Shown here piece by piece: positions 1 to 40,348 of a stretch of 64,000 nt of DNA (positions are counted from its first letter, which is position 1; each line of letters starts with the position of its first letter). Under the pieces are notes generated by a model. It saw nothing but the letters and a program-made list of their open reading frames with translations, was not told the origin of the DNA and made no database searches. This DNA comes from Geosiphon pyriformis uo1 (Eukaryota > Fungi > Glomeromycota), in the NCBI GenBank assembly GCA_016748015.1, contig JAAOMT010000468.1:248001-312000 (forward strand), read 5' to 3'. The translations under genes and the position numbers were made by a program.

Positions 1-3000
1 ACTGTGGCAGAAGGTGATTATTGAATTTGAGGAGTGGAATCAAGCAGATCTTTTAGTGGCTAGGTGGTCCATCCTAATTGGGAAAGATACAGTGTGTATT
101 GCCAGATCAGATTTGAACAAAATAACATGGGATATGAAAGATCATTATAGGGTGCTGCTTTATACTCTTTTGGTGGGAACAAATGCTTATGACATATAAG
201 ACTACATTGGTTCTGTGGGTGGGAAAACATGTATGATTGATTGCTATCCAGTTACATATGCCCGGGCCAGATGTACCATTGTTTGTTTTGAGTCAGCTGA
301 ATCATTAGATACCATCATAGGAACCACACCTGTGTTAAAAGATGTTCATCTTTGTTGGTCTTATCTTGGTTCTGCTGTATATGCAAAGTGTGGAAAACTG
401 GGTCATTCCTCTTTGGGCTGTGTTTCAGGTGGGAAATCTTCCTCTGGTGGCTTGCCATATCATGTTCTTTCAGATGCAGATAAAAGCAGGCTGGCAGCTA
501 TTTATGCTAAGTGTTTGGCACCTATTGCTCATCCTGTTTCTTTTGGTGATGTCTTATGGACTGAGATTATTGGTGGATCCTCCTTTTCTTCTCCTTTTGT
601 TCAAAATGTTTTGTTGAATGATGGCTTCTTTTCGGAGATGAAGCCTACTCTGCAGGTGTCTTTGGTGTTAAATGACAGATTTGCCACTCTTGAGCACAGT
701 CTCACCAGCCTTGTAGAGCATGTGGATAAGCTGACTAAGAAGTTGGATGCACCTGGGCCAATGGTTTCCCAGCTTAGCCTTGGATTTTAATTGTTGGTGA
801 CCCCTTCATCACAGAATCAAGGGGCAGATACAGTGATAAGTAAGAGTTTGGGTGTGGACACTAATGGTGGAACTGTTGCAGAAATGACAGTTTTTGATTC
901 TTTGGTTGTCTTGAAAATAAAGGAAACATTGAAAAATTTTTCAATTACAGTTATGAGTCTTTTGGCTAAAATGGACAATGCTAGTTTGATTCCTGCTTCT
1001 CATTTTTCTCAATAACAAATCTAGTTTGGAAAATTGTGATGTGCAATGTTCAAAGTATCAATGTTTCTGCTAAGCAAGAAGACATTGTTCATTGACATAA
1101 GGAATCAGACAATTTGGTCTCGATTGTTACAGAAACAAAATTATGGTCCAGCATTAAGCCATGAATTGCTGATAAGTTTGAGGATGTGTGGGTCTTTACA
1201 TCTGGCTTGGACAAGGGTTTTCTTGGTGCTGGAGTAGCAATAATTATGAACATTTGTTTGGTCTATTATGTATCTAAGATTGAAGAAGTTCTTAGTTGGA
1301 TGGTTTTAGTGTATCTTTTGTTCAAGAGCAAGCTTTTGGTTACATTTCTGGGCTTGTACGCTAGTGCTTCTGCTGATGCTAGGTTTGGTCAGACTCTGGA
1401 GGTGAACTTATTAATTGCTAAGACTGTCAACTTTAGCACTTTTGTTGTCTTGGGTGGTGACTTCAATGAAAATGGGTCTGAGAAGAGTGTGAGTTTCAAG
1501 TTCTGTTTGGATTTGGGTTTGGTCAACTCATTTGCTGGCCATCATTTGGTTAAGACTCCTACTTGGAGCAACTCGAAGAGAGTTGAAAAGACTATTGATT
1601 ATATTTTTTTTAGTGAGAGCTTGTCTTCTACTGTTGCTAGTCATGGAATTGGTTCTGTTTCTGGCTTTTTTGATACTGATCACAAGGCTGTTACTGTGTC
1701 CATTGGTTTAGGTGGATTTTTGGATATTTGTTTAAATAGTTTACACAAGCAGACCAATAAGAATTGTTGGAAGTTTAGAATTAAAGATGCCAACAGTGCA
1801 AAGTGGTCTTGTTTTAAGGAACACTCTTCCACTAAGCTTTTAGGGATTGGAGAGAAATTGCAGAATGCTGGAGCTCTTTTGGATTTGGATCTAATGTAGT
1901 CATTGTTGGAAAAAATGATGGTAGAATTAGCTGACGAAGTGTTTTCTAGGCATTGGTTCAGTGAATTTCAGTGTTCTAGAAATAAGCAGTTTTCTAGGTT
2001 TTTTGGGCTGGAAATGTTGGTTGCAAAGATTGTTAGGGTGTTGGGCTCAGGTAATATTTCTAGTCTTGGTTGTCTCTTAAGGAAATAGTTAGTTTTGGAT
2101 GCTAGCAAGGCTTCCATTGTGTTGGCCCTAATTCAGGATAGTGAAAAACTTTCTGTTATTCTTAAACATTTGTCTCTGATCAGAAAAGAATATTGGAAAT
2201 CTAAGATGTATGAGTCATGGTTAGCTGAGGAAGCTTCTATTAGGGAGGCTATTGTAAAACAAATAGACAAGTTTTGTTTGGATAAAGGTGGCATGATCAG
2301 GAGTGTTTTGCACTGTTCCTTTCACAAGGTGGTTCTGAATCATTTGATTGTAGATGATGGTTTAGTTTTGGAACCTGAGAAGGTAAAAGTCAGCGTTGAT
2401 AATATCATGGAGAGTTGGACAAGGAAGTGAATGGTGCCTATGGTGGTGCCTGACCTCTGGACTTGCCAATATGTGCCTTTGGACTATGTGCGAAATGATT
2501 CTTTTTCTGGGGTAATGCACAAAATTGGCTTGGATGAACTGTTTTCAGTCATTAAAGACTTGTCTGATGGCAAAACTGCTGGTTTGTCTGGTATCTCTAA
2601 TGAGTTATGGAAACATAATAGTAATGAGGTATTGGGTTGCCTTTTGGAGCTGTTAAATACATGTTTAGTTGTTGGTGGGGTGCTTACTTTGTGGAAGAGG
2701 GCATGAGTTTCAATAATTCCAAAACCATATAACTGGGATGGGGTCCTCATAAATACTCAACCCATAGCCTTGATTGAGACTGCCTGGAAGATTTTTTCTA
2801 AGATCTTGTCTGATCATATTTTGCAGGCATGTAGTAAATTTGGAGTTCTCTGTAGAGACAACTTTTCGGTTCTAAAAAGCACTTCCACACAGTCTCTGGT
2901 GTTTGCTGTTGGGTCAGTAGTTGAAGATGCAATTGAAAAGAATAGGGAAATATAACTGGTTCTACAAAATATGAGAAAAACTTATGATTCTGTTGAGTGG

Positions 3001-5838
3001 TTTTACTTAAGGGCTAGCCTGCAACATATCAAAATGTGTGATAAATTCATTCAATTTTTTGGTAGTATACAAAAGGATAGGATTAATTATGTGATAACTG
3101 ATTTTGGCTTAACTAAAGACTACAAGGTGCATGATGGATTGGATCAGAATGAGGTTTTTTCACCTCTTCTCTGGAGAATCTTCTACAATTCGCTCCTGTG
3201 TGAGGTTAAGCAACATAAGCAATTGTGTGGTTACTATATTGATACTAAGTTTGTTTTGAGAACTGGCAAAATTAAAAGTTGTGATGGTTTAACATCTTAT
3301 TTTGCTGCAGGGGCATTTGTTGATGATACTATTTGGATTGGGAATTGCCAGATCTCTACTCAATTTGCTCTGAACATTGCCAGTGAATTTTTTGAGATTA
3401 ATGACATTTCTATCAACAGTAATAAGACAGTGGCTATTCCAATTAATCAGAGTGTCAAAGTTGCTTCTTTGTTTATTTGCGGTCAGCCAATCTCTGTTGT
3501 CAGGAAAGATGAAGCTTATCATTATTTAGATATCTTTTTGTCTACTAAGGGTCTGTCTAAACTGAGTGTTGCCAAGGCTTATTCTAATGTTCAATTCTTT
3601 GTTAATGTTGTGCTTAGAAAAGCTATTACAGACAAACAATTCTCCTATTTGATGTCAGCTGTCTTGCAGTCTATTGTTAATTACAGAATTCAGTTCAGTT
3701 TTGTCTTATCAGGTGTTTGTTACAAGTGGGATGTTATGATTCGAAAAGGTCTTAAGGTGAAGGCTAAGCTGTCCCAAGATTTTCCTGATACAGTATTGCA
3801 TCATCCCTCTTTGTATGGTTTGAAAACTTTTAAACAGATTCAGTTTGAAGCAAAAGTTGCAGCTTTGGTTTTCTTTTCCAATGCTTCTGGTATTCTTGGG
3901 CATTTGTTTAATCACAGGTTCTTGGATTTACAGGTTTTGAGTTGGGCTTCTTTAAATCCCTTGCAGTTTCCAGTCAAGTTACATGTTAGTCCAGTGAACA
4001 ATTTTTTGGCTGGCTTGGTTAGGATTTTGTTGGACAATGAGCTTTCTTTGGCAAACAATTTTCCAAATGCTTTTCATGACTCTGGTCAGCTTCTTTTGTC
4101 TTCAATTCTTGGGAAGTTTCTGTACTTCGATTCTGTGCATTCTTTAAAGCACTTTGGTGTTGCTTTTGGGGATAGACTTTTTGATAAGAAGGGTAGTGTG
4201 TTGGATTGAAAAACTTTTCATGAGTAAAAGAGACTGAATTTTTGTGGTCCTGTCCCTCATTGGTTTGTAATTGCTTCTAATCATTTGCTGAACCCAGTTA
4301 TATCTTCATCAAGCTCTGCCAAGTCTGTTCATTCTGGCTTTGTAGATATTATGGAATCTAGTAAGTTTTCTGGTGTGAAAGATGATTTGCATGAAATATG
4401 ATCTGGTTTGTTTGAGATATATACAGATGGGTCCTTAAAAAACACAGGCTCTAGTAGTGTTGCTAGTGGGGCTGCTGCCTATTTTCCCGCATTAGATCAT
4501 AGTGTTAGTGTTTTTGTTGTTGGTCTACTGTCTTCTACTATGACCAAATTGCAAGCCATTGCATTGTCCTTGGAGTGTGTTCTGTCTTCAAGTAATGTGA
4601 TTTTGTATCTTGACAGCCAAGCTGCTATTGATGCTTATGTTTCTGAGCTGTCTTCTACTGTGCCTGATTTCTGTAACCAATACTGGATTAAGAGGCATCA
4701 CATTTTTAATTTGGTTAGAGAAAAAGATCTTAGTGTGAATTGGGTGAAGGTCAAGGACCATTCTAGAATTCATGGTAATATTGAGGCTGATTTGGTAGCT
4801 GGTAAGGCTACATAGTCTTCTTTTAGATTGATGGCTGGAGTGCAGAAGCAGTTTTTGGTTGCTAAAAACACTGCTGTATTGGGTAATGTCTGCCATTTTG
4901 TCAGAGATATGTTTCGATTCATTTGCTATGCTTGTTGGGAGGCTGGTCCTGATTTTGATGTGGTTTCTGAAAATTTGATAAAGTGTGTGAACTGGGTTGC
5001 TACTGTGAAGGTGTGACATCTTGACTCCCATATGCTTGCTGGTTTTACTGATCTTATATCTTCCAATCTGTGCACATACATCATGAAGGCAATACATAGA
5101 CAGTTGCTGGTGGCTGTTCAAAAGAGATTATATGATAAAAAATACCCTGGCATGTTGTGCTTGATGTATAGGGAGGTGGAATTTTCAGATTACATTTTTA
5201 CTTGTGTTGGTAACATTGGTATTTGTAACAATATTCTGGCAAAGGCTTTTGCACGTTGGTCTGCTCTAGTTGGTGCTCACCTTTCATCATCTTCTGCCAT
5301 TTTGCAGGTGTTATTACAGTGTTTCTCAGATCTGGGATTATATACTGTGGTGTATAAAAGGTTTGTCTTGGGTGAATGAAGTGAGAAGACCTATAGGACT
5401 TTTGAGGATAAAAAGGAAGCAGATGTTCAGATAGTTGGGTTTGTGAAATTTATTGTGGAGTTGCATCATGTGAAGACTTGGTTGGTAAGGTCTGGGCACA
5501 GGATTATCATAGAAAGAGCAGGTTTGGTTTATGATGATGGTGTAGTTTCTAGTTTGTTTCGCATTATCCCCTTTTTTTTGTCAGATGGAGTGGTTAGATT
5601 ACTTGGTTTGTGTGAGTCATTTGCTGTTGACTTCAGCCATTGTAAGTTATGTGATTTTTTTTCTGGTCTGAGTGGTAGTGTTAGGGTTTAAGTAAGTGTG
5701 TAGTGTTGCCTTGACTGGTCCAAGTGGCTAGCCACATGTAGAGAGTGTGTGAATTGCATTTAGTTTAAGCCACTTAGTTTGGTTCTTTGTACTAAATAGT
5801 GGTTGGGCTTCACTCATTAAATTGCAATAAAAAAAAAA
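1..5838 (+). mobile_element. LINE (non-LTR retrotransposon) copy 1, inactive, 5' end beyond window
   Basis: ORF1 remnant (14-1015) with degenerate CCHC knuckle (KCGKLGHSSLGC). ORF2 remnant with APE, RT and RNase H. 3' UTR with AATAAA and A-run at 5829-5838. Homologous to copy 2 throughout. Confidence 0.95.
1012..5703 (+). pseudogene. LINE ORF2 (APE endonuclease - reverse transcriptase - RNase H - C-terminal Cys region) with many in-frame stops
   Basis: Motifs GGDFN, IDYIF, DTDH (APE); KTYDSV, EVFSPLLW, AFVDD (RT); IYTDGS, DSQAAI, WVKVKDH (RNase H). ORF-track fragments 1186 to 5443 all share one frame. Start ATG mutated to ATA at 1012. Confidence 0.92.
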
Positions 5839-16800: not shown

Positions 16801-18533
16801 TCCCAGTTCATATTAAAATCAGTGCTTCTAATAATTTTTTGGCAGATATGGTTCATATTTTTCTTGGGTACAGTCTGTCTCTAAGTAGTCAAGTAAATAA
16901 TTCTTTCCATTTTCATGGTGGTATTCCCATGTTATCTGTTTTTGACAGGTCTAATTACTTTGGATTTCTTCCATCCCTTTAGAGATATGGTATTGCTTTT
17001 GTTGAACAGCTTCACTGTAAGAATGGAGCTGTTTTTGATTAGAAAACATTCAAGTATTGGAAAAAACTGGACCTATGTGGCCCTGTTCCTAAATGGTTTA
17101 GGCTTTTTATTGACTTTCTTGATAGTGTAGTTTTTTTCCCTGCTCATTTTTTGCCTGTAGTTGGTACTGAGCATTTGGATATTTTGGAATTTAGTGAGTT
17201 TGGACTGATTTATAATTGGTTACTGGATTTCGAGACTGACAGTCTTTCCATTTATATGGATGGATCTCTGAAGGGATTGGAGAGTGTTAACATGAGAGCT
17301 GGTGCTGCAGTTTTTTTTGAAGATATAAGCTTGGATTTGGGGGTCAGAGTTTCTGGTTTAATGTCTTTTACTTTGGCTGAATTGCAGGCCATTGCATTGG
17401 CTTTTAAGTGTGTCCTTCCTAATAGTTCAGTTGGTGTCTATTTAGACAGTCAGGCTGTTTTGGATGTTTGCAAATCAGAATTAGGTATAGTTTATCTGGA
17501 TTTTAGGAATTGCTGTTGGGTTGAGCATTGGCACATTGTGAACATTATTAGAAAAAAAGACTTGAGTGTTAGCTGGCACAAGATGCAGGGCCATTTGGGT
17601 GTTATGAACAATAAACATACTGATGCACTTGTTAACACAGTGTTTTTTTCTCCCTGGTGTCTTGTTTTACATGTGAAAAAACATTATATTTTAGCTGATG
17701 GGAATGTTGTTTCTGGTAATTCTAGACATTTTGTTTGTGGGGTCTTTTAGTCTATTCATTGTGTATACTGAGAGGTCAGTTTAGGTTCTAAGGTTTTAGA
17801 TAGTAGTCTGCATTCAGACGTTGATTGGTTTAGCTTATCATTGGTATGGCATCCAGACTTGCACATAGCTGCTGGCTTCATTAGTAAATCCACAGCTAAT
17901 GTTCACACATATTTTATAAAAGCCCTATACTATTGGCTGCTGGTCGCTGTTTAGAAGCATTTGTATAACAGATACTATTTCAATGTGCTGTGGTTGTATT
18001 GTAGTGAAGTTGAGGTTTCTGACCATGTCTTTTCTTGTATGGTAGATGATTCTGCTCATTGTCATTTATTGGATGCTTATGTTGCTACTTGGGGCCTTCT
18101 TTCTGGTCTTTCTGTCTTCTTTTCAAGTGTTTCTTAATTTTTATCTTCTTATGCTTCAAATGTCACAGTTTGTATAGCTTTTTGCAAAAGCTTTGTTTTT
18201 AAGAATTGGCTTCAGAAAGCTGTGTTTGTTTTTGGAAATGCCAAAATAGCTGGTTAGAAGGTTGTGGAATTTGTGCGTAACTTGTGTTTTGTCTTTAGGG
18301 ACAAGATTTGGTTGGTCCATGTTAAGTATTGTGCCTGCATAGAAAAAAATAAGATAATACCTAGTGACAGTTTGGCTTTAGTTTCAGTTTCAAGGCTGTC
18401 TGCATTGCTTTTTGCAGGTGTTGTTAAGTTGCTGGGTATTGCTGAAGCAATTGGTGTTGGTTTTGGTTTTTGTAAGTCTTGTTTGTTTTTCTCAGGTATT
18501 GGAGACTTAGTTTTGGTACATATAAGTGTTTAA
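13845..18533 (+). pseudogene. LINE ORF2 (APE-RT-RNase H), in-frame stops
   Basis: CNV, ETK, GGDFN, DTDH; DMRKAY, DQGEVFS, AFVDD; IYMDGS, AELQAI, DSQA. All ORF-track fragments are in one frame (1563 codons). Confidence 0.93.
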
Positions 18534-21385: not shown

Positions 21386-21552
21386 TGTGTATATCTTAAA
21401 ATTAGAATGAAAGCGAGAAATTGAAATATACTCAAAATCGTGATAATCATTGATAAAATCAGTTGATGCATGTATGTAAAATAAATTTTTATGTTTCAGC
21501 TGAAATTCCCTTTGTGGCACAGTACTCTCAATAAAAAGTTGGGTCCTTGAGA

Positions 21553-23896
21553 ATGGAACAAAAGAACACAAGTAAAACTAAAGTTTTGACTGCCTCTGAA
21601 GCAGATTTGGCAGACGGGAGGCATCCAAAGACCAAAAATCACGCTAAATATCCCAAAATATTTCCCAAAAAACGACGAGTTGAAAAGGATAAAGTTGAAA
21701 GAGATTTAGAAGCTTTAGTCTTTGGTGGTGATGTTGAAGACCTAGCTCAAGAAGTTTATCATAGAATAGAACAGAACACAGATGAAAGCTATGATCCGGA
21801 AATTGAGGAGGAGGAAGAGAAACAAAAATCAATACCAGATCTGAACCAAAAGCCGAACAAAATCAAGAACGGTGAAGAGGAGGAAACTTCGGACAAGCCG
21901 GTATTGCTGGATATCTCTGTTGCTGATTTAGAATATGCTCATTGGAGGCTAAAAAGCTATAGTTCCAGTTATTTGTAATAGATACCAAGGGAAGTCGCGT
22001 ATCTCATAATAAACTCAAGCTCCCTCAAAATATATCGGGAAGTTCAAAAAGCACAGATAGTGCAAAAGAACAATATGAAGATGATGACGATGACGATGAA
22101 GATGAGAAAGAGGAAAAAGATTCTGAATCAATATTAACTGAAGGTATTCGATAACTGACTTTTCCTCATTTTTCAATTGACCTAATTAAGACTACTAAAT
22201 ATTACACAATCTAACCCCTCTAAAGTCGAGGGAGATAAAGATGAAAAACGAGCTTGGGTTGATCCGGACGACAAGGAAGTCTCAATATCATTGGCAAAAA
22301 GGAATATGCTTCGAAAATTAAGAAAAACGGAAGATGAAGATACCATATCAGGTGATAAATTTGAAATACGTTTAAGAAAACAGTATGTATCATTTAAAAT
22401 TTTTCAAAATTTTCCCTTTGCTAAAGTCATTTATCTATTTTAGACATGCAAAACTACATCCAACGCCAGGTTGGGCCGTATTACCATCCGAATTAAAGAA
22501 ACAAAAAAAGCGGAAAAAAAGGGCTCGTTCTTCTGAAAGCGAATCTTCTGATGCCAGTGAGCAACAATACTCTGATGAAGATATTGAATTGTTGAGGCAA
22601 TCCCACGGCTTCTTACAAAAAGAAAAACCGAAATTCTTACCGCCTGAAGATCTTGAGGTTGTTCGAATGAGGGATGCAAATCAAAAGGCTTATTCGCAAG
22701 TTCGAATCATTTCCTAAAAATTTTGAAAAAAAAAGTAAATTTTTATACCTGGCACCATCAAACTTACCCACTATTTTGATCTTAAAGTCTGTCATACAAT
22801 CGATCTCTTTCCACCCTAATGCCCAAGTTCTGATGACAGCGGGTTTAGACAAAACATTAAGATTGTTTCAGGTAAAATTCAAATTTTGATTAAGCGTGGA
22901 TTAAATTTCTTGGTCTAATTACTTCGAATTCTTCAATCCAGATTGACGGTAAATACAATTCCAAAATTCAATCAATATTTTTAGAAGATCTTCCAATCCG
23001 GAAAGCATCCTTTAATCCTAGTGGCACCGAGATTATTGCCACTGGTCGACGCCCATATTTTTATTCCTATAATGTGGAAGCTGGTCGTATTGAAAAAATC
23101 CCCAAAATCCATGGACGTCAAGAAAAATCATATGAAGATTTTTCCATATCTCCATGCGGGGGTTATATTGTTTTTGCTGGGAGGGATGGGTATCTAATAT
23201 TGATTAATTCTCAAACAAAACAATGGATCGCAAATATGAAGATTAACGATTCAATCAAAGGGTTTGATTGGTCGGGTGATGGAAAATATTTATTTTGTAT
23301 TGGCGGGGATGCAGATATCTATCAATGGGATGTAGGGGCAAGGAGATGTGTTCATCGATTTCAAGATGACGGTGGATTTAAACCCACCTCTATCGCTTTA
23401 TCCAACAATGACGAGTATATCGCTATCGGGTTAGTCTTCATGCCATGAAAAGATTCTTTATATTAATAATGTATTTAACCTCTTGATTTTCAGTTCTCGT
23501 TCAGGGATAGTCAACATTTACGATAAATCATGCCTACTGAGCATCAAACCTAAACCACTTAAAGCTATTTCAAATTTGACAACGGCAGTCCATAAATTGG
23601 AATTCAATCATGACTCGCAAATTTTGGGAATGTCCAGTCATTCTAAAAAAGGACAATTAAAGATGGTAATCGAGAAAGTTTTCCTTAAAACTCTATCCGT
23701 TACTCTATTAATCACTTTGATTTACTTAAAGGTCCATTTACCATCTTTGACCGTTTTCAAAAATTGGCCGACGTCTGGGACACCACTTGACTACGTGGAA
23801 TCCTTTGACTTCTCGCCTAACAGTGGTTATATTGCTATAGGCAATTCCAAGGGTAAAGTTCCCTTGTATAGACTCAGGCATTTTGCTACGGCTTAA
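21553..23896 (+). CDS. UTP18: U3 snoRNP / SSU processome WD40 protein, 8 exons
   Basis: ERDLEALVFG, AWVDPDD, RMRDAN, FHPNAQVLMTAGLDKTLRLFQIDG, HLPSLTVFKNWP, FSPNSGYIAIGN. Introns checked in frame. Confidence 0.92.
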
Positions 23897-24634: not shown

Positions 24635-26541
24635 CTAAATTTTTGGCAACGCAAATTCATACGCGTTCACAAAATACCATATAATTGGAGCTAAAGGAAT
24701 AATAAAATACCAAATCTGACCCAATTCGAAAACACTATTAAGACGAGCTGGCACAATTTTTGGTTTTCCGTAGATGGAAGTAAAGCGTCCATTAACATAG
24801 AATTCCGTCATTAACATATCTTTTTCGTTCCATCGTGCTCGTAGCCATTCGGTAAATTTGTTTTCATCACTTGGTAAATCACTAGTTCTGAATCGACGTA
24901 TGTGAACGTGAATATTCGGGGGATATCGTCCCTCGAAATAGATTCTACGTAATGTATAAATGTCCTCTGGGTATTCACCCGGTTTCACACCCTCCAATCC
25001 GATGGTCAAATCATACATCCATTCAACGGACTTTTGCAATTTCTCGGTACAAAAGTGAAGTCCCGTCGACCGAGGTAGCAATAAATGTTTTTGGTCAACC
25101 TAAAAGTTTAGATATGTAGACTTGATTTCAGATAATCTAAGATATTAAAAAATATAAAAGAAGTTCATTCAAGAGGTACCAAATTATTTTTATCTGCATA
25201 GATTTTTGATATTTTACGCGTGCATTCAGAAACCAAAGTTCCTTCGGGAAATATTAGCAGCCATAAAGGATCTTTTGAGTTGGCGAGATTACCCAATGTT
25301 CGGTCCATATTTTCCTGATCACTTGCCCAATTTCGTTTGAGAAAGATAAATTGAAAAAATTGCATTCCCTGTATGAAATAAAAGATGTAAGAAATGAGTT
25401 TTGAGATAGAATAGATGATGATATTGTAGAAATAATCCAGAATGATAATATAAAATATTAATGGGTGCTGCTGTTAGCGAGTTGAAATAACAGATTCTGG
25501 CTGATATTGTCGAAAGGTGAAGTAGCAGATGTAGAGGGTTGGAAGCGATATTGCCGATCTAAAGAGAATGTTGACCAATCGAAAATATCGGGCAACAAAA
25601 GCTCGTAACATTAAATCCTCTTGAAAATTGATATCAAAGAATTTTCCGTGCGACAAATAAATTTCACTTTTTCAATGGAACAATTTACTGCTTACCCTAA
25701 AAAATATGATAAAGATTTTTAATCGAGTTCTGTTTCAAAGAGAGGTAGATCAATTCTTACCATCCGAATAATGGCATCCATTTTAATGAATCCTTCAAGA
25801 TAATCTTGATTGCTCCATGTGCATTAGCTAAATACGCAAAACACCTTTAGACAGGGTAAAATATGATTGAATGATTAATTCAAATGAAAAAAAGATTCTC
25901 AAGCTCGATATTATATGTTTTCTCAACATACCAGATGTATAACCAATCCGCATAAATCTTTTTGGGACCAAGATGAAAAGTTGAGAATATTTTTCGTTGA
26001 AGCAGTTGAACAAAAGAGTCTATTTTCATACCTGATGATTAGCAATTAAAACGATCCGTTCGGGAATATTCAATTCAACTTTTGCGCCGTTCCATGTTTG
26101 TTTTATCACATCTTTAGCGGAATCGTCTGTAGTAATTACGAAATTACTGGGTGCAAAAAATTGATTGATAGCCATCAATAACACACCAAAAGATTTTTGG
26201 GTTTGAAGAATGTAATATTGGTAGTAAGCCTTGGAGAAAGGCCACAGAAGAAGACCGAGGAACTGGGAAAAATTTATCACAACTGACTGTCCAGCTAATT
26301 TTTATTGATAATTGGGTAGTTAAAAAATTAAGGACAAGTAATTTTATCAAGTTACAGAGGTGTGCAAAGTCAAGGTCAAGTTTGAATGACAGATGAAAAC
26401 TAGCAAACTCAGTTCTTTGTGGAGTTTACTTTTGACTCGAATAAAAAGCATACCATAAAATGCACAAAAGGCGGCCGTTCTCACCAGCCAATTCACTAGG
26501 TTAGGTGCCGTGTCGCGCGGTGACTCTCTCGTGATGGCCAT
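24635..26541 (-). CDS. PlsC-family lysophospholipid acyltransferase (LCLAT1/Cst26-like) with a 26-nt exon and a probable 1-nt exon
   Basis: NHQ-IYAD (HxxxxD split by an intron), LKDSLKW, FIFLKRNW, IFPEGT, LLPR and a C-terminal acyltransferase domain. Confidence 0.9.
25696..25696 (-). other. Putative single-nucleotide exon (G)
   Basis: TTTTTTAG|G|GTAAGC inside the intron supplies the one base needed to read GGA TG+G+GGA ATG (GWGM). Confidence 0.75.
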
Positions 26542-28340: not shown

Positions 28341-28790
28341 ATAACTATCTTTTATATTGATCAATATTTAATCTATTATTTATTTCACTTACGATGGACC
28401 ACCCTATTCCAAAATAAAATTGTAACCCATCCAAATTATCTTTTGTTTAACAAGTTTTTTCTCCTAAATTCAATGTTAAAGTTTAAATTGATTTACACAG
28501 ACCAGACCAGACCAAACCAAATCAAACCAGATAAAACCATTCACTTATCAATCCAGATAGATTTCTTTCAGTGTAATCTGATATACTTTATTTAACAAAA
28601 GATTTTTATTTCAAAGGAAATTTACTCAAAGATAAAAGATTGCAAGACCCAGCTAAAATACCTGAAATATATTATACTGGTTATCAACAGATGATCATTC
28701 CTAATTATCAAAAATTTTATCATTATCGTGCGTACATGTTCAACGATCGTGTTCCTGCACAATCATCCAACTTACCAACTCGGCGAGAAA

Positions 28791-30227
28791 ATGTTACAAG
28801 AAAATGAACATTCTACATCAGCTTTCCCCTCTATTTCTTCAGATATTCAGGAAACTCCCATTCGTATAACCTGGAACGTTTTCGGTGACTTAACTGAGAC
28901 CCTTTTCTGGCCAGCGACAAATATAACCGAGGAGAAGATAGTTCTTTTTATGATCCCTGGTAATCCGGGAGCAATAGATTATTATATACCTTTTTTATCA
29001 ACTATTTATAAAGAGTATCAAAAGAGAATTGAAATCATTGGAGGTTTGCTTTGTTAATTTTGATTAATTTCCCACCTTTATGAAGATTCAAATTTGATAA
29101 TCATGTTTTCTAAATAATTAAATATCATCAAATCGATTTCTTTTGGTTTCTCCTCTAGTATCACACCTTGGTCATACCCATGGACCACATAATAACTCTT
29201 TAAAAAGATTATGGTCACTTCAGGATCAAATCGAACACAAGATCAAATGTTTTGACTTGATACGTGAAAAATTTCTGGTCCAAGATGGTGCTGATGGTGG
29301 TGGTGGTGGTGGTGATGGTGGCCTACCAAAATTTATCTTATGCGGTCATTCGATGGGAGCCTATATTTGTTCTCGGGTTGATTTTCACATATTTATTTCT
29401 CCCGTTATAATTCAATGTTTGCAGTTTTTCTAGAAAGATTAGAGTTAAAACTTTCTAATCTTATTAGTTGTTGAAGGCACGTCCGAATCATGGTATAGAT
29501 CGCACGTATTTTTTGTTTCCTACATTGCAACATATCGCGAAAACTCCTAATGGTACCATGCTAACGGTATTCAATTTTTATTTTACACTTTTCACCTCTC
29601 AATCATCCTCTCCAAAACTATCTTGTTTATCATTGAATTATTTATCCCGCCAACTAACCTATAATTCTGGTGATCTTTTTTAACCTACCCCGTCTCTTAG
29701 TGGCTATTCTACGAACGTCCACGAAACTTATTAAGCACTCTCATCCACTCCCTTCGTACACTCCTAGGTCCAACCGGATTCAAAACCTTAATTCGCTTCG
29801 TGACATATCAACAAGAACCTCATCTATCAATAACAGCTGACAGATTATTACATTGGCACGTTGTGCAGAATACCCTTTACATGTCTGATACAGAAATGAA
29901 AGACATTCACGAATTGGACGAGGACTTTTTTCGACAACATATTCAAACATGTGTATTTTATTTTGGGAAAACTGATAATTGGGCCCCAATTGAGCACTAT
30001 CGTGATATGGTGGCACGATTTCCAGATGGAAAAATTCATCTTTGTGAAATTGGAATGGCGCATGCTTTTGTACTAGGTAAAGATCAACGAGGGTAGAAGT
30101 TTGTAAATTAAAAGAATATGAAGAAATTCTATTCTTTACCTCTCTTATTTTTAATTTTTTTTAATTTACAGAGCACAGCGAAATTATGGGCAGAAAAATG
30201 TTTCAATGGATCAAAGAGTCTTTGTGA
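28791..30227 (+). CDS. Lipid droplet-associated alpha/beta hydrolase (LDAH/DUF2305-like), 5 exons
   Basis: FMIPGNPG..YY.PFL, SHLGH, SLQDQIEHK, GHSMG nucleophile elbow, LFPT, TPNG, DNWAP, HAFVL. Confidence 0.88.
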
Positions 30228-39030: not shown

Positions 39031-39390
39031 CGTTTAATGAAAAAAGAAATAACCAGAAAAGTGAAAAATGGTTAATCATGAGACGCTAACTTGAAAAAGT
39101 TTCCTTGACAAGTTCAAGAGCTCCTAGAACTTGGAAACGGTAATGAATTACCTCGTATTGATTATAGAAACTCATATCGTGACTAATAATCTATACTGAA
39201 ACAAACTCGGACCTTATTTAAAGAAAAAATATCCACTACCCAATCTTTTTATCCTAGACTGTTTCTAACAGTATACCAAAGCCATTTAATCTACCTGTAT
39301 TCGACTGTATAATTTTAGGTGTTTGAAAAGTCAAGCTACTGTTGTGAACGATTGACCATTTTGTTTGGGATTTTAACTTTTGTTTTCCTA

Positions 39391-40348
39391 ATGTCTTCTA
39401 ACCCTCCCAGTTCTAACTATGCACAAACAAAGTATGATGCGGCTGGCTATAGTACAACTGGAACAGGGCGCGAACCTTCATCTTCCTCGGGATACTATAA
39501 CATAGACTACCCTTTTCCTGCACCAAACCCTGCTAATACTACGACTTATTATGCTGCTCCCAACATAACCACATCAAACACTGGTTATGAAAGCTACGAC
39601 TACGCCCCTTACACAACTAGTTATTATTATCAATATCCGACAACAACAGGAACTTCAACAACCTCAACTCCGACTGTTTTGGAGGCACCACCTACACTAA
39701 CTACTTCTATACATTCATCTCTTACTCACTTGAAAACTGTCAATCCACCTATTTCGGTGCCAAACCACTCGAATAAAGATCTGACACACACATTGAATTA
39801 TAATGATTTGGGGAAGCAAACTGGAGCTGCTCAGAAAAAAAAGCAAAAAACCATTGTCCGAGCCGCGGGAGGTGAAGTTTGGGAAGATCCAACTTTATTA
39901 GAATGGGATACAAGTAAGATACAATGATTTATGGATGAATAAATATTTTAGTATAAATTATTAATGCATATATCACCTCCCAGACGATTTTCGTTTATTT
40001 TGTGGCGATCTCGGAAATGAGGTTACAGATGATGTCTTATACAAAGCTTTCGGTAAATACCCTTCACTACAAAAAGCTAAAGTAGTACGCGACAAGCGCA
40101 CTGGAAAATCTAAAGGATATGGATTTGTTAGCTTTAAAGATGCTGATGAATTTGTCAAGGCTTGGAAGGAAATGAATGGTGAGAAGAGATTTATTTCGGT
40201 CTGTATAAATAAATAATATCAATAATATGAGTACGGCTTTTTATTTATAGGAAAGTATGTTGGAAATCGACCAATAAAGTTGCGCAAAAGTACATGGAAG
40301 GATCGCAATATCGAAGTTAAAAACAAGAAGCACCATCCCTATAAATAA
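39391..40348 (+). CDS. RBM42: RNA-binding protein 42-like (RRM), 3 coding exons
   Basis: IVRAAGGEVWEDPTLLEWD..DFRLFCGDLGNEVTDD..KAKVVRDKRTGKSKGYGFVSF..GKYVGNRPIKLRKS. Confidence 0.9.

Follow-up and report, generated by a model that had tools for sequence, protein, structure and literature searches.

A one-nucleotide exon in an acyltransferase gene of Geosiphon pyriformis, conserved at the same codon in Mucoromycota and in Basidiobolus

A single G on the minus strand of the Geosiphon pyriformis genome, at position 25696 of the 64,000-nucleotide stretch analysed here (the window), was found to form an exon of one nucleotide in an acyltransferase gene. We put at about 0.93 the probability that this base is a genuine one-nucleotide exon and functionally obligatory, that it was present in the ancestor of Mucoromycota at the latest and that Basidiobolus shares it. 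The base stands between a canonical AG acceptor and a canonical GT donor of two workable introns, and it is both needed for the reading frame and kept in the orthologs, in 12 of 12 genes. It is also present in spliced RNA, namely in an alternative isoform of Geosiphon (run X3) and in an in-frame transcript of Paraglomus. One-nucleotide exons as a class are already known; what is new is the depth of conservation, the retention of G at degenerate codon positions and the mis-annotation of the site in many public gene models.

The acyltransferase gene consists of seven exons on the minus strand (Table 1), and its open reading frame comprises 371 codons when the G is included. One of the other exons, exon 3, is itself a micro-exon of 26 nt that holds part of catalytic motif 1. 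Beyond the coding region, a strong donor-like sequence, GAAG/GTAAGT (slashes mark exon-intron boundaries), was observed at 24630-24625 on the minus strand, 4 nt past the stop codon. The RNA contig of run X3 crosses this sequence unspliced and continues to 24514; a 3' UTR intron in another isoform of the acyltransferase is possible there.

Table 1 Features of the acyltransferase gene in the window.
Feature	Position	Strand	Length and content	Evidence or remark
Exon 1	26454..26541	-	88 nt, from ATG	Splice signals; tblastn match to homologue N-termini; outside the RNA contig
Exon 2	26032..26294	-	263 nt	Ends with NHQ of AGPAT motif 1; X3 covers 26032-26234 and joins exon 3
Exon 3	25932..25957	-	26 nt, IYADWLYI, remainder of motif 1	X3 joints skipping 74 and 87 nt
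Exon 4	25761..25844	-	84 nt	Final bases TG are the first two of the Trp codon
Intron 4	25697..25760	-	64 nt, GTAAGA...TTTTTTAG	Phase 2; position common to 11 other genomes
One-nucleotide exon G	25696..25696	-	Base 3 of the Trp codon in P-x-x-G-W-G-M	Frame, RNA, orthologs
Intron 5	25369..25695	-	327 nt, GTAAGC...CATACAG	Phase 0, before Gly-Met
Alternative exon extension	25369..25558	-	190 nt, behind acceptor TTTAG ending at 25559	X3, depth about 23
Exon 6	25180..25368	-	189 nt, GMQFF...FLKR and FPEGT, AGPAT motifs 2 and 3	Partial PF01553
Exon 7	24635..25099	-	465 nt with stop; motif 4 LLPR; Acyltransf_C	PF16076; X3 reaches 24514

The encoded enzyme is most likely a CST26/LCLAT1-like lysophospholipid acyltransferase, a prediction drawn from its domains and from the names given to homologues in their sources, one of which is called 'related to CST26'. 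In homology searches, which used single exons or public proteins rather than the joined spliced model, exon 7 matched PF16076 (Acyltransf_C) with 57.7 bits, above the cut-off of 26.5, and exon 6 gave a partial match to PF01553 with an E value of 7e-4, which as a piece is below the curated cut-off. According to the published definitions of the AGPAT motifs, in which motif 1 reads xHxxxxD (PMC8753187), motif 1 is present as NHQ/IYAD across exons 2 and 3, and motifs 3 and 4 are present as FPEGT at 25251 and LLPR at 25081. In motif 2, GxxFxxR, the sequence QFIFLKR has the F and the R, with Q replacing a G that certain fungal homologues have. G-W-G is by far the commonest triplet ahead of the M-x-F-F segment among 150 homologues. 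The combination of PF01553 with PF16076, together with the AGPAT motifs, is shared with the AGPAT lysophospholipid acyltransferases that carry Acyltransf_C, both fungal (CST26-like) and animal (LPLAT6/LCLAT1); this likeness to yeast Cst26 and human LCLAT1 is one of architecture and motifs. Against solved structures, a weak PlsC match alone was obtained (E 0.073). Exon 6 has one match in the entire Geosiphon genome, so the gene is single-copy and there is no second copy to stand in for it.

Around the one-nucleotide exon, exon 4 ends in GGA TG at 25761 and is followed by the donor GTAAGA from 25760, the acceptor TTTTTTAG ends at 25697, the donor GTAAGC begins at 25695 directly after the G, and the acceptor CATACAG ends at 25369, after which exon 6 opens at a codon boundary with GGA ATG at 25368. 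The coordinates and letters that a first-pass annotation of the window had given for this site, all on the minus strand, were correct. The 392 nt between exons 4 and 6 hold one well-formed acceptor-base-donor site, TTTTTTAG/G/GTAAGC, and both introns flanking it are canonical GT-AG introns. The G completes the Trp codon and preserves the frame of motifs 2-4; its omission leads to a stop at codon 192 (25256-25254). The original proposal that the base is needed both for the frame and for the GWGM motif is supported. The G at 25696 is, moreover, the sole path to the conserved G-W-G-M motif that uses a single exon and canonical sites. Other single internal exons that restore the frame were rejected, as they contained stops or combined weak donors with the insertion of 23-58 foreign residues; routes by shifted splice sites fell away too, through stops, weak donors or large inserts, and retention of either intron 4 or intron 5 likewise yields stops.

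The AG/G/GT motif alone is weak evidence, being common and not diagnostic. When the 392-nt interval was Markov-shuffled, about 1.5% of the copies contained a chance site of the form HAG-G-GTR. Genome-wide, WWWWYAGGGTAAG occurs 68 times, compared with 244 occurrences of its reversed form and 182 of a permuted form used as controls, so that no enrichment was seen, although repeats weigh on all of these counts. A homology-free screen of 58 of the 68 WWWWYAGGGTAAG sites did not separate real one-nucleotide exons from ordinary exon ends, and inspection of eight WWWWYAGGGTAAG sites by eye found no convincing one-nucleotide exon among them. The site at 25696 stands beyond chance because of its conservation in all 12 genes.

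The conservation of AG-G-GT in orthologs, which the first-pass annotation had named as a check, was observed at the identical codon in every one of these genes, that is, in Geosiphon and in 11 other genes of Mucoromycota and Basidiobolus. The general arrangement is two codon bases/GT...AG/G/GT...AG/GGN ATG, with flanking introns of 45-674 nt across the genes; in Paraglomus occultum, the edge of the contig cuts off the donor of intron 4. The exon is present in Ambispora, Paraglomus, Rhizophagus, Diversispora, Gigaspora and Entrophospora of the Glomeromycotina, in Linnemannia of the Mortierellomycotina, in Bifiguratus, Rhizopus and Apophysomyces of the Mucoromycotina, and in Basidiobolus meristosporus (L010). 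The chance of finding the motif at any one locus ranges from 0.002 to 0.19, and the product over the 12 genes is near 1e-20, a value that overstates the significance since the genes are related, although drift has randomised the intron interiors. No alignment above the shuffled background was obtained between the interior of intron 5 and those of seven relatives. A quick gene tree follows the known fungal groups, and the recovery of these expected groups is consistent with a single ortholog group. All 12 genes have G as this base, even where it completes the codons CTG and TTG (Leu) or ACG (Thr), in which the protein would tolerate a different base. In addition, an intron-free sequence from a metagenome collection (L015) reads TTC GGA TGG GGA ATG across the site. 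It shares 97.7% amino-acid and 92-93% nucleotide identity with Paraglomus occultum, belongs to a different Paraglomus isolate or species, and is the in-frame product in a Glomeromycotina transcript.

In Geosiphon itself, the sole RNA contig at the gene comes from run X3, a separate sample from the possible source of the assembly, and has a length of 1,279 nt and a depth of about 23. Introns 2, 3 and 6 are absent from it at their predicted lengths, and the contig is therefore a transcript. Its sequence passes from exon 4 through a single additional G to the segment that follows an acceptor at 25559. Had 25760 been spliced directly to 25559 by GT-AG, no such G would remain, whereas a one-base exon accounts for it. 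By retaining 190 nt of intron 5, this isoform is shifted in frame and reaches a stop at 25321-25319, ahead of motifs 2-4; the retained stretch 25369-25558 (minus strand) is itself stop-free in the frame read, and the stop falls in exon 6. The first-pass annotation had predicted an in-frame RNA junction with four Gs, and in its place the contig carries the junction to 25559. The in-frame joining of the G to 25368 was not seen in X3, which is no proof of its absence from the run, as contigs give one path and drop minor ones, and the assembler used, Minia3 (10.1101/2024.07.30.605881), prunes minor paths. The contig is unbroken along the unproductive path, which suggests that transcripts of this form were not rare in X3. 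At 24796, 25446 and 23948, RNA sample S2 departs from the assembly by single bases, probably through strain or allele differences.

The public gene models at this site are frequently wrong, as the first-pass annotation had expected of gene predictors. The NCBI model of the Geosiphon gene, G9A89_013418 (P0161), matches the exons in the window and is 68% identical to the Rhizophagus protein, and it carries 17 invented residues at the junction. Six of ten annotated ortholog proteins that were checked are mis-modelled and do not have the correct junction; the other four, from Rhizophagus, Gigaspora, Basidiobolus and Rhizopus, agree exactly with exon 4 + G + exon 6. Exons 3, 4 and 5 together sum to 111 nt, so that predictors are able to drop all three in frame, and this joint omission was found in P0004, P0006, P0007, P0158 and P0192. 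The affected public proteins either miss a third of the catalytic domain or contain invented inserts, and recognition of the exon puts right the gene models of this single-copy lipid acyltransferase across many mycorrhizal and mucoralean genomes.

Three readings would remove the one-nucleotide exon altogether. If a G were missing from the assembly, or differed through a strain indel, exon 4 would end in TGG and be followed by one 392-nt intron, and the extra G of X3 would look identical, so that X3 by itself cannot tell an exon from a G missing at 25760/61, and no DNA contig was found across 25755-25765. It is the orthologs that settle this, since at the donor two codon bases precede GT in ten other complete loci, and the internal AG/G/GT is present in eleven other loci; furthermore, run X1, which may be the source of the assembly, contains the region's sampled 31-mers at a fraction of 1.00, and in X3 the first bases of exon 6 are free of indels, all of which makes an error of this kind very improbable. 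We attach just as little belief to G9A89_013418 being right, with exons 25696-25689 and 25619-25576 restoring the frame at the cost of the 17-residue insertion. Its path is open, in frame and bounded by GT-AG ends, but the 17 residues fall within GWGM and are lacking in correctly joined homologues, the weak donor GTCAAC is required, the interior of intron 5 is not conserved, and in X3 the donor at 25695 is used straight after the G. The G would be intronic if the two nested-looking introns with their adjoining splice sites were a stwintron, a structure that occurs in fungi (PMC5587772), or a zero-length recursive site. This is scarcely credible, as the reading frame requires the G in the mRNA and RNA sequences contain it; nor does the removal of intron 4 make use of the G to restore an outer intron's GT donor or AG acceptor. 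By the definition of stwintrons (PMC5587772), the site falls outside that class, both introns being complete alone and the G coding; nor is it a zero-length recursive site, its sequence being AG-G-GT with the G retained.

Two further readings accept the exon and concern its use. The first-pass annotation had proposed that skipping of the G acts as an on/off switch through nonsense-mediated decay (NMD), and such regulated skipping would be compatible with a real exon; the stop that it creates at 25256-25254 precedes the last junction by about 75 nt. We nevertheless regard a skipping switch as improbable. X3 holds no skipped product, and the unproductive form found there keeps the G and arises through an alternative 3' splice site; no conserved intronic element was found, the Rhizopus region of 48+1+45 nt leaves scant room for regulatory elements, and the one-nucleotide exon of plant APC11 is constitutive (PMC4674806). 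The single-G exon of the acyltransferase reads as constitutive as well. If unproductive splicing regulates the gene, a matter that one contig cannot show, the pointer is the acceptor at 25559 and not skipping. It is possible, though we hold it to be the lesser chance, that this acceptor controls or partly cripples the Geosiphon gene and that the unproductive form makes up a large share of transcripts in at least one condition. X3, at a depth of about 23, runs unbroken through both branch points along the unproductive path, and the pruning by Minia3 suggests that in run X3 the in-frame junction was at most a minor one. Against this, the observation comes from one contig of one run without read counts, the region of acceptor 25559 is not conserved in relatives, and the gene is not decaying, with its open reading frame intact, a single copy and 68% identity of its public model to the Rhizophagus protein.

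A splicing pathway for the one-nucleotide exon can be proposed from the layout of its splice sites. The footprint of U1 pairing spans positions -3/-2 of a donor. The acceptor AG of intron 4 occupies positions -3/-2 of the donor of intron 5 and lies inside this footprint, so that both sites would not be engaged at once and the introns would be removed in turn, one after the other, by intron definition. Intron 4 is 48-98 nt long in 10 of the 12 genes, and in Geosiphon it has a weak branch-point candidate about 24 nt from its 3' end. Intron 4 is short, precedes intron 5 in transcription and suits intron definition; it would probably go first, and its removal would leave TGG/GTAAG, a normal exon end that could be re-used as a donor. 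This re-use would resemble recursive splicing except that one base stays; the likeness to recursive splicing raised in the first-pass annotation is accordingly retained as a working model, but the base is kept and the site is no zero-length recursive site. The reverse order of removal would produce the identical mRNA. Skipping would be disfavoured, as it requires the donor of intron 4 to bypass a nearby acceptor in favour of another at a distance of 392 nt. For APC11, the same two-step model has been put forward (PMC4674806).

Conservation of G at this site is probably due to its double role, G being preferred both at position +1 of an acceptor and at position -1 of a donor, and the three degenerate codons are suggestive of such a splice-site role. 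In Rhizopus, where the whole unit spans just 48+1+45 nt, the base occupies a fourfold degenerate codon position, and any substitution there would leave the protein unaltered. The order of splicing and the need for G are therefore directly testable in a laboratory mould, in which the unit offers a natural test bed for the spliceosome.

One-nucleotide exons have been described in plant APC11 and VPS55 (PMC4674806, PMC8831610), in Fusarium CYP621A, where the core is AGGGT (PMC12940212), and in Coprinopsis cinerea, in which long reads identified 13 of them in 13 genes (PMC12230235); with 13 in this one species, the first-pass statement that such exons are very rare was overstated. The CYP621A exon is also fungal, has an AG/G/GT core, lies inside a conserved motif, is required for the frame, is hidden in an over-long intron, is missed by annotation and is supported by RNA. 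It belongs to another gene family, however, and its base is the middle base of a Gly codon, in contrast to the third base of Trp, Leu or Thr codons here; it was reported from one genus, whereas the acyltransferase exon spans three subphyla and Basidiobolus. With APC11 and VPS55 the acyltransferase exon shares an internal exon of one nucleotide between canonical introns, conservation in a deep clade with loss in some lineages, a proposed sequential splicing and absence from annotations. The base in APC11 is A and has been validated by mutation, whereas the acyltransferase G is known from sequence and RNA. The Coprinopsis exons demonstrate that one-nucleotide exons recur in intron-rich fungi, but are counts in one genome. 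As in recursive splicing at zero-length AG/GT sites, an acceptor abuts a donor, and the introns are likely to be removed stepwise, with the newly formed exon end serving again; the acyltransferase differs in retaining one coding base and in its short introns. In the literature we found no report of the single-G exon of the acyltransferase, nor of any one-nucleotide exon as old, and it is a very deeply conserved addition to the short list of such exons.

The APC11 and VPS55 exons go back to mosses and liverworts, and the acyltransferase exon goes back to crown Mucoromycota at least. Crown Mucoromycota are dated to 1,213-678 Ma, compared with 612-431 Ma for land plants (PMC12592215), and the exon is thus probably older than about 670 million years. 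The position of Basidiobolus is contested, and the genus has been placed in the literature in Zoopagomycota or beside Mucoromycota; its possession of the exon means either a greater age or support for a placement next to Mucoromycota. In a basidiomycete-like ortholog (L086, 1130-1200), the downstream phase-0 intron alone is present and there is no one-nucleotide exon at the site. One of the two introns, which lie one base apart, may have been lost in this lineage, or the upstream intron may have been gained later. Several other hits read G-W-V...Q-G-M, a pattern like that of L086. Neither intron is found in the chytrid Synchytrium (L014) or in the ascomycete-like loci that were classified. The upstream intron was thus observed to be common to Basidiobolus and Mucoromycota and to be absent in one chytrid and in the Dikarya-like loci seen, and the two intron positions one base apart are a possible character for the disputed placement of Basidiobolus. 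A wider reading would make this one of the oldest one-nucleotide exons on record and not just a frozen accident, treat the exon and intron 5 as a splicing checkpoint by which Geosiphon, in some conditions, switches off a single-copy enzyme of membrane-lipid remodelling through acceptor 25559, and let the upstream intron possibly unite Basidiobolus with Mucoromycota. As a whole this reading is rather unlikely; its age part is well supported, and its regulatory and phylogenetic parts are speculative.

Several other features were noted in the window. Fragments of non-LTR retroelements, with matches to endonuclease, reverse transcriptase and RNase H and a strong GC skew, lie at 215-4209 and 17151-17750 on the plus strand. 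An RRM-type gene, presumably RBM42-like, occupies 39319-40330 (plus strand). A candidate exon of 4 nt at 40251 on the same strand, in which the acceptor at 40250 is followed by GAAAGTATG, was rejected, as it is really an ordinary exon start of this RRM-type gene. The convergent neighbour of the acyltransferase at 21547-23896 (plus strand) has the look of a WD40 ribosome-biogenesis gene and is UTP18-like by the appearance of its open reading frames alone; its 3' end is covered as far as 24248 by an X3 contig, which leaves about 270 nt to the end of the acyltransferase transcript. About 2 kb upstream of the acyltransferase, at 28728-30096 on the plus strand, lies a divergent multi-exon gene of alpha/beta-hydrolase-like sequence with a GHSMG motif, which we take to resemble lipid-droplet hydrolases.
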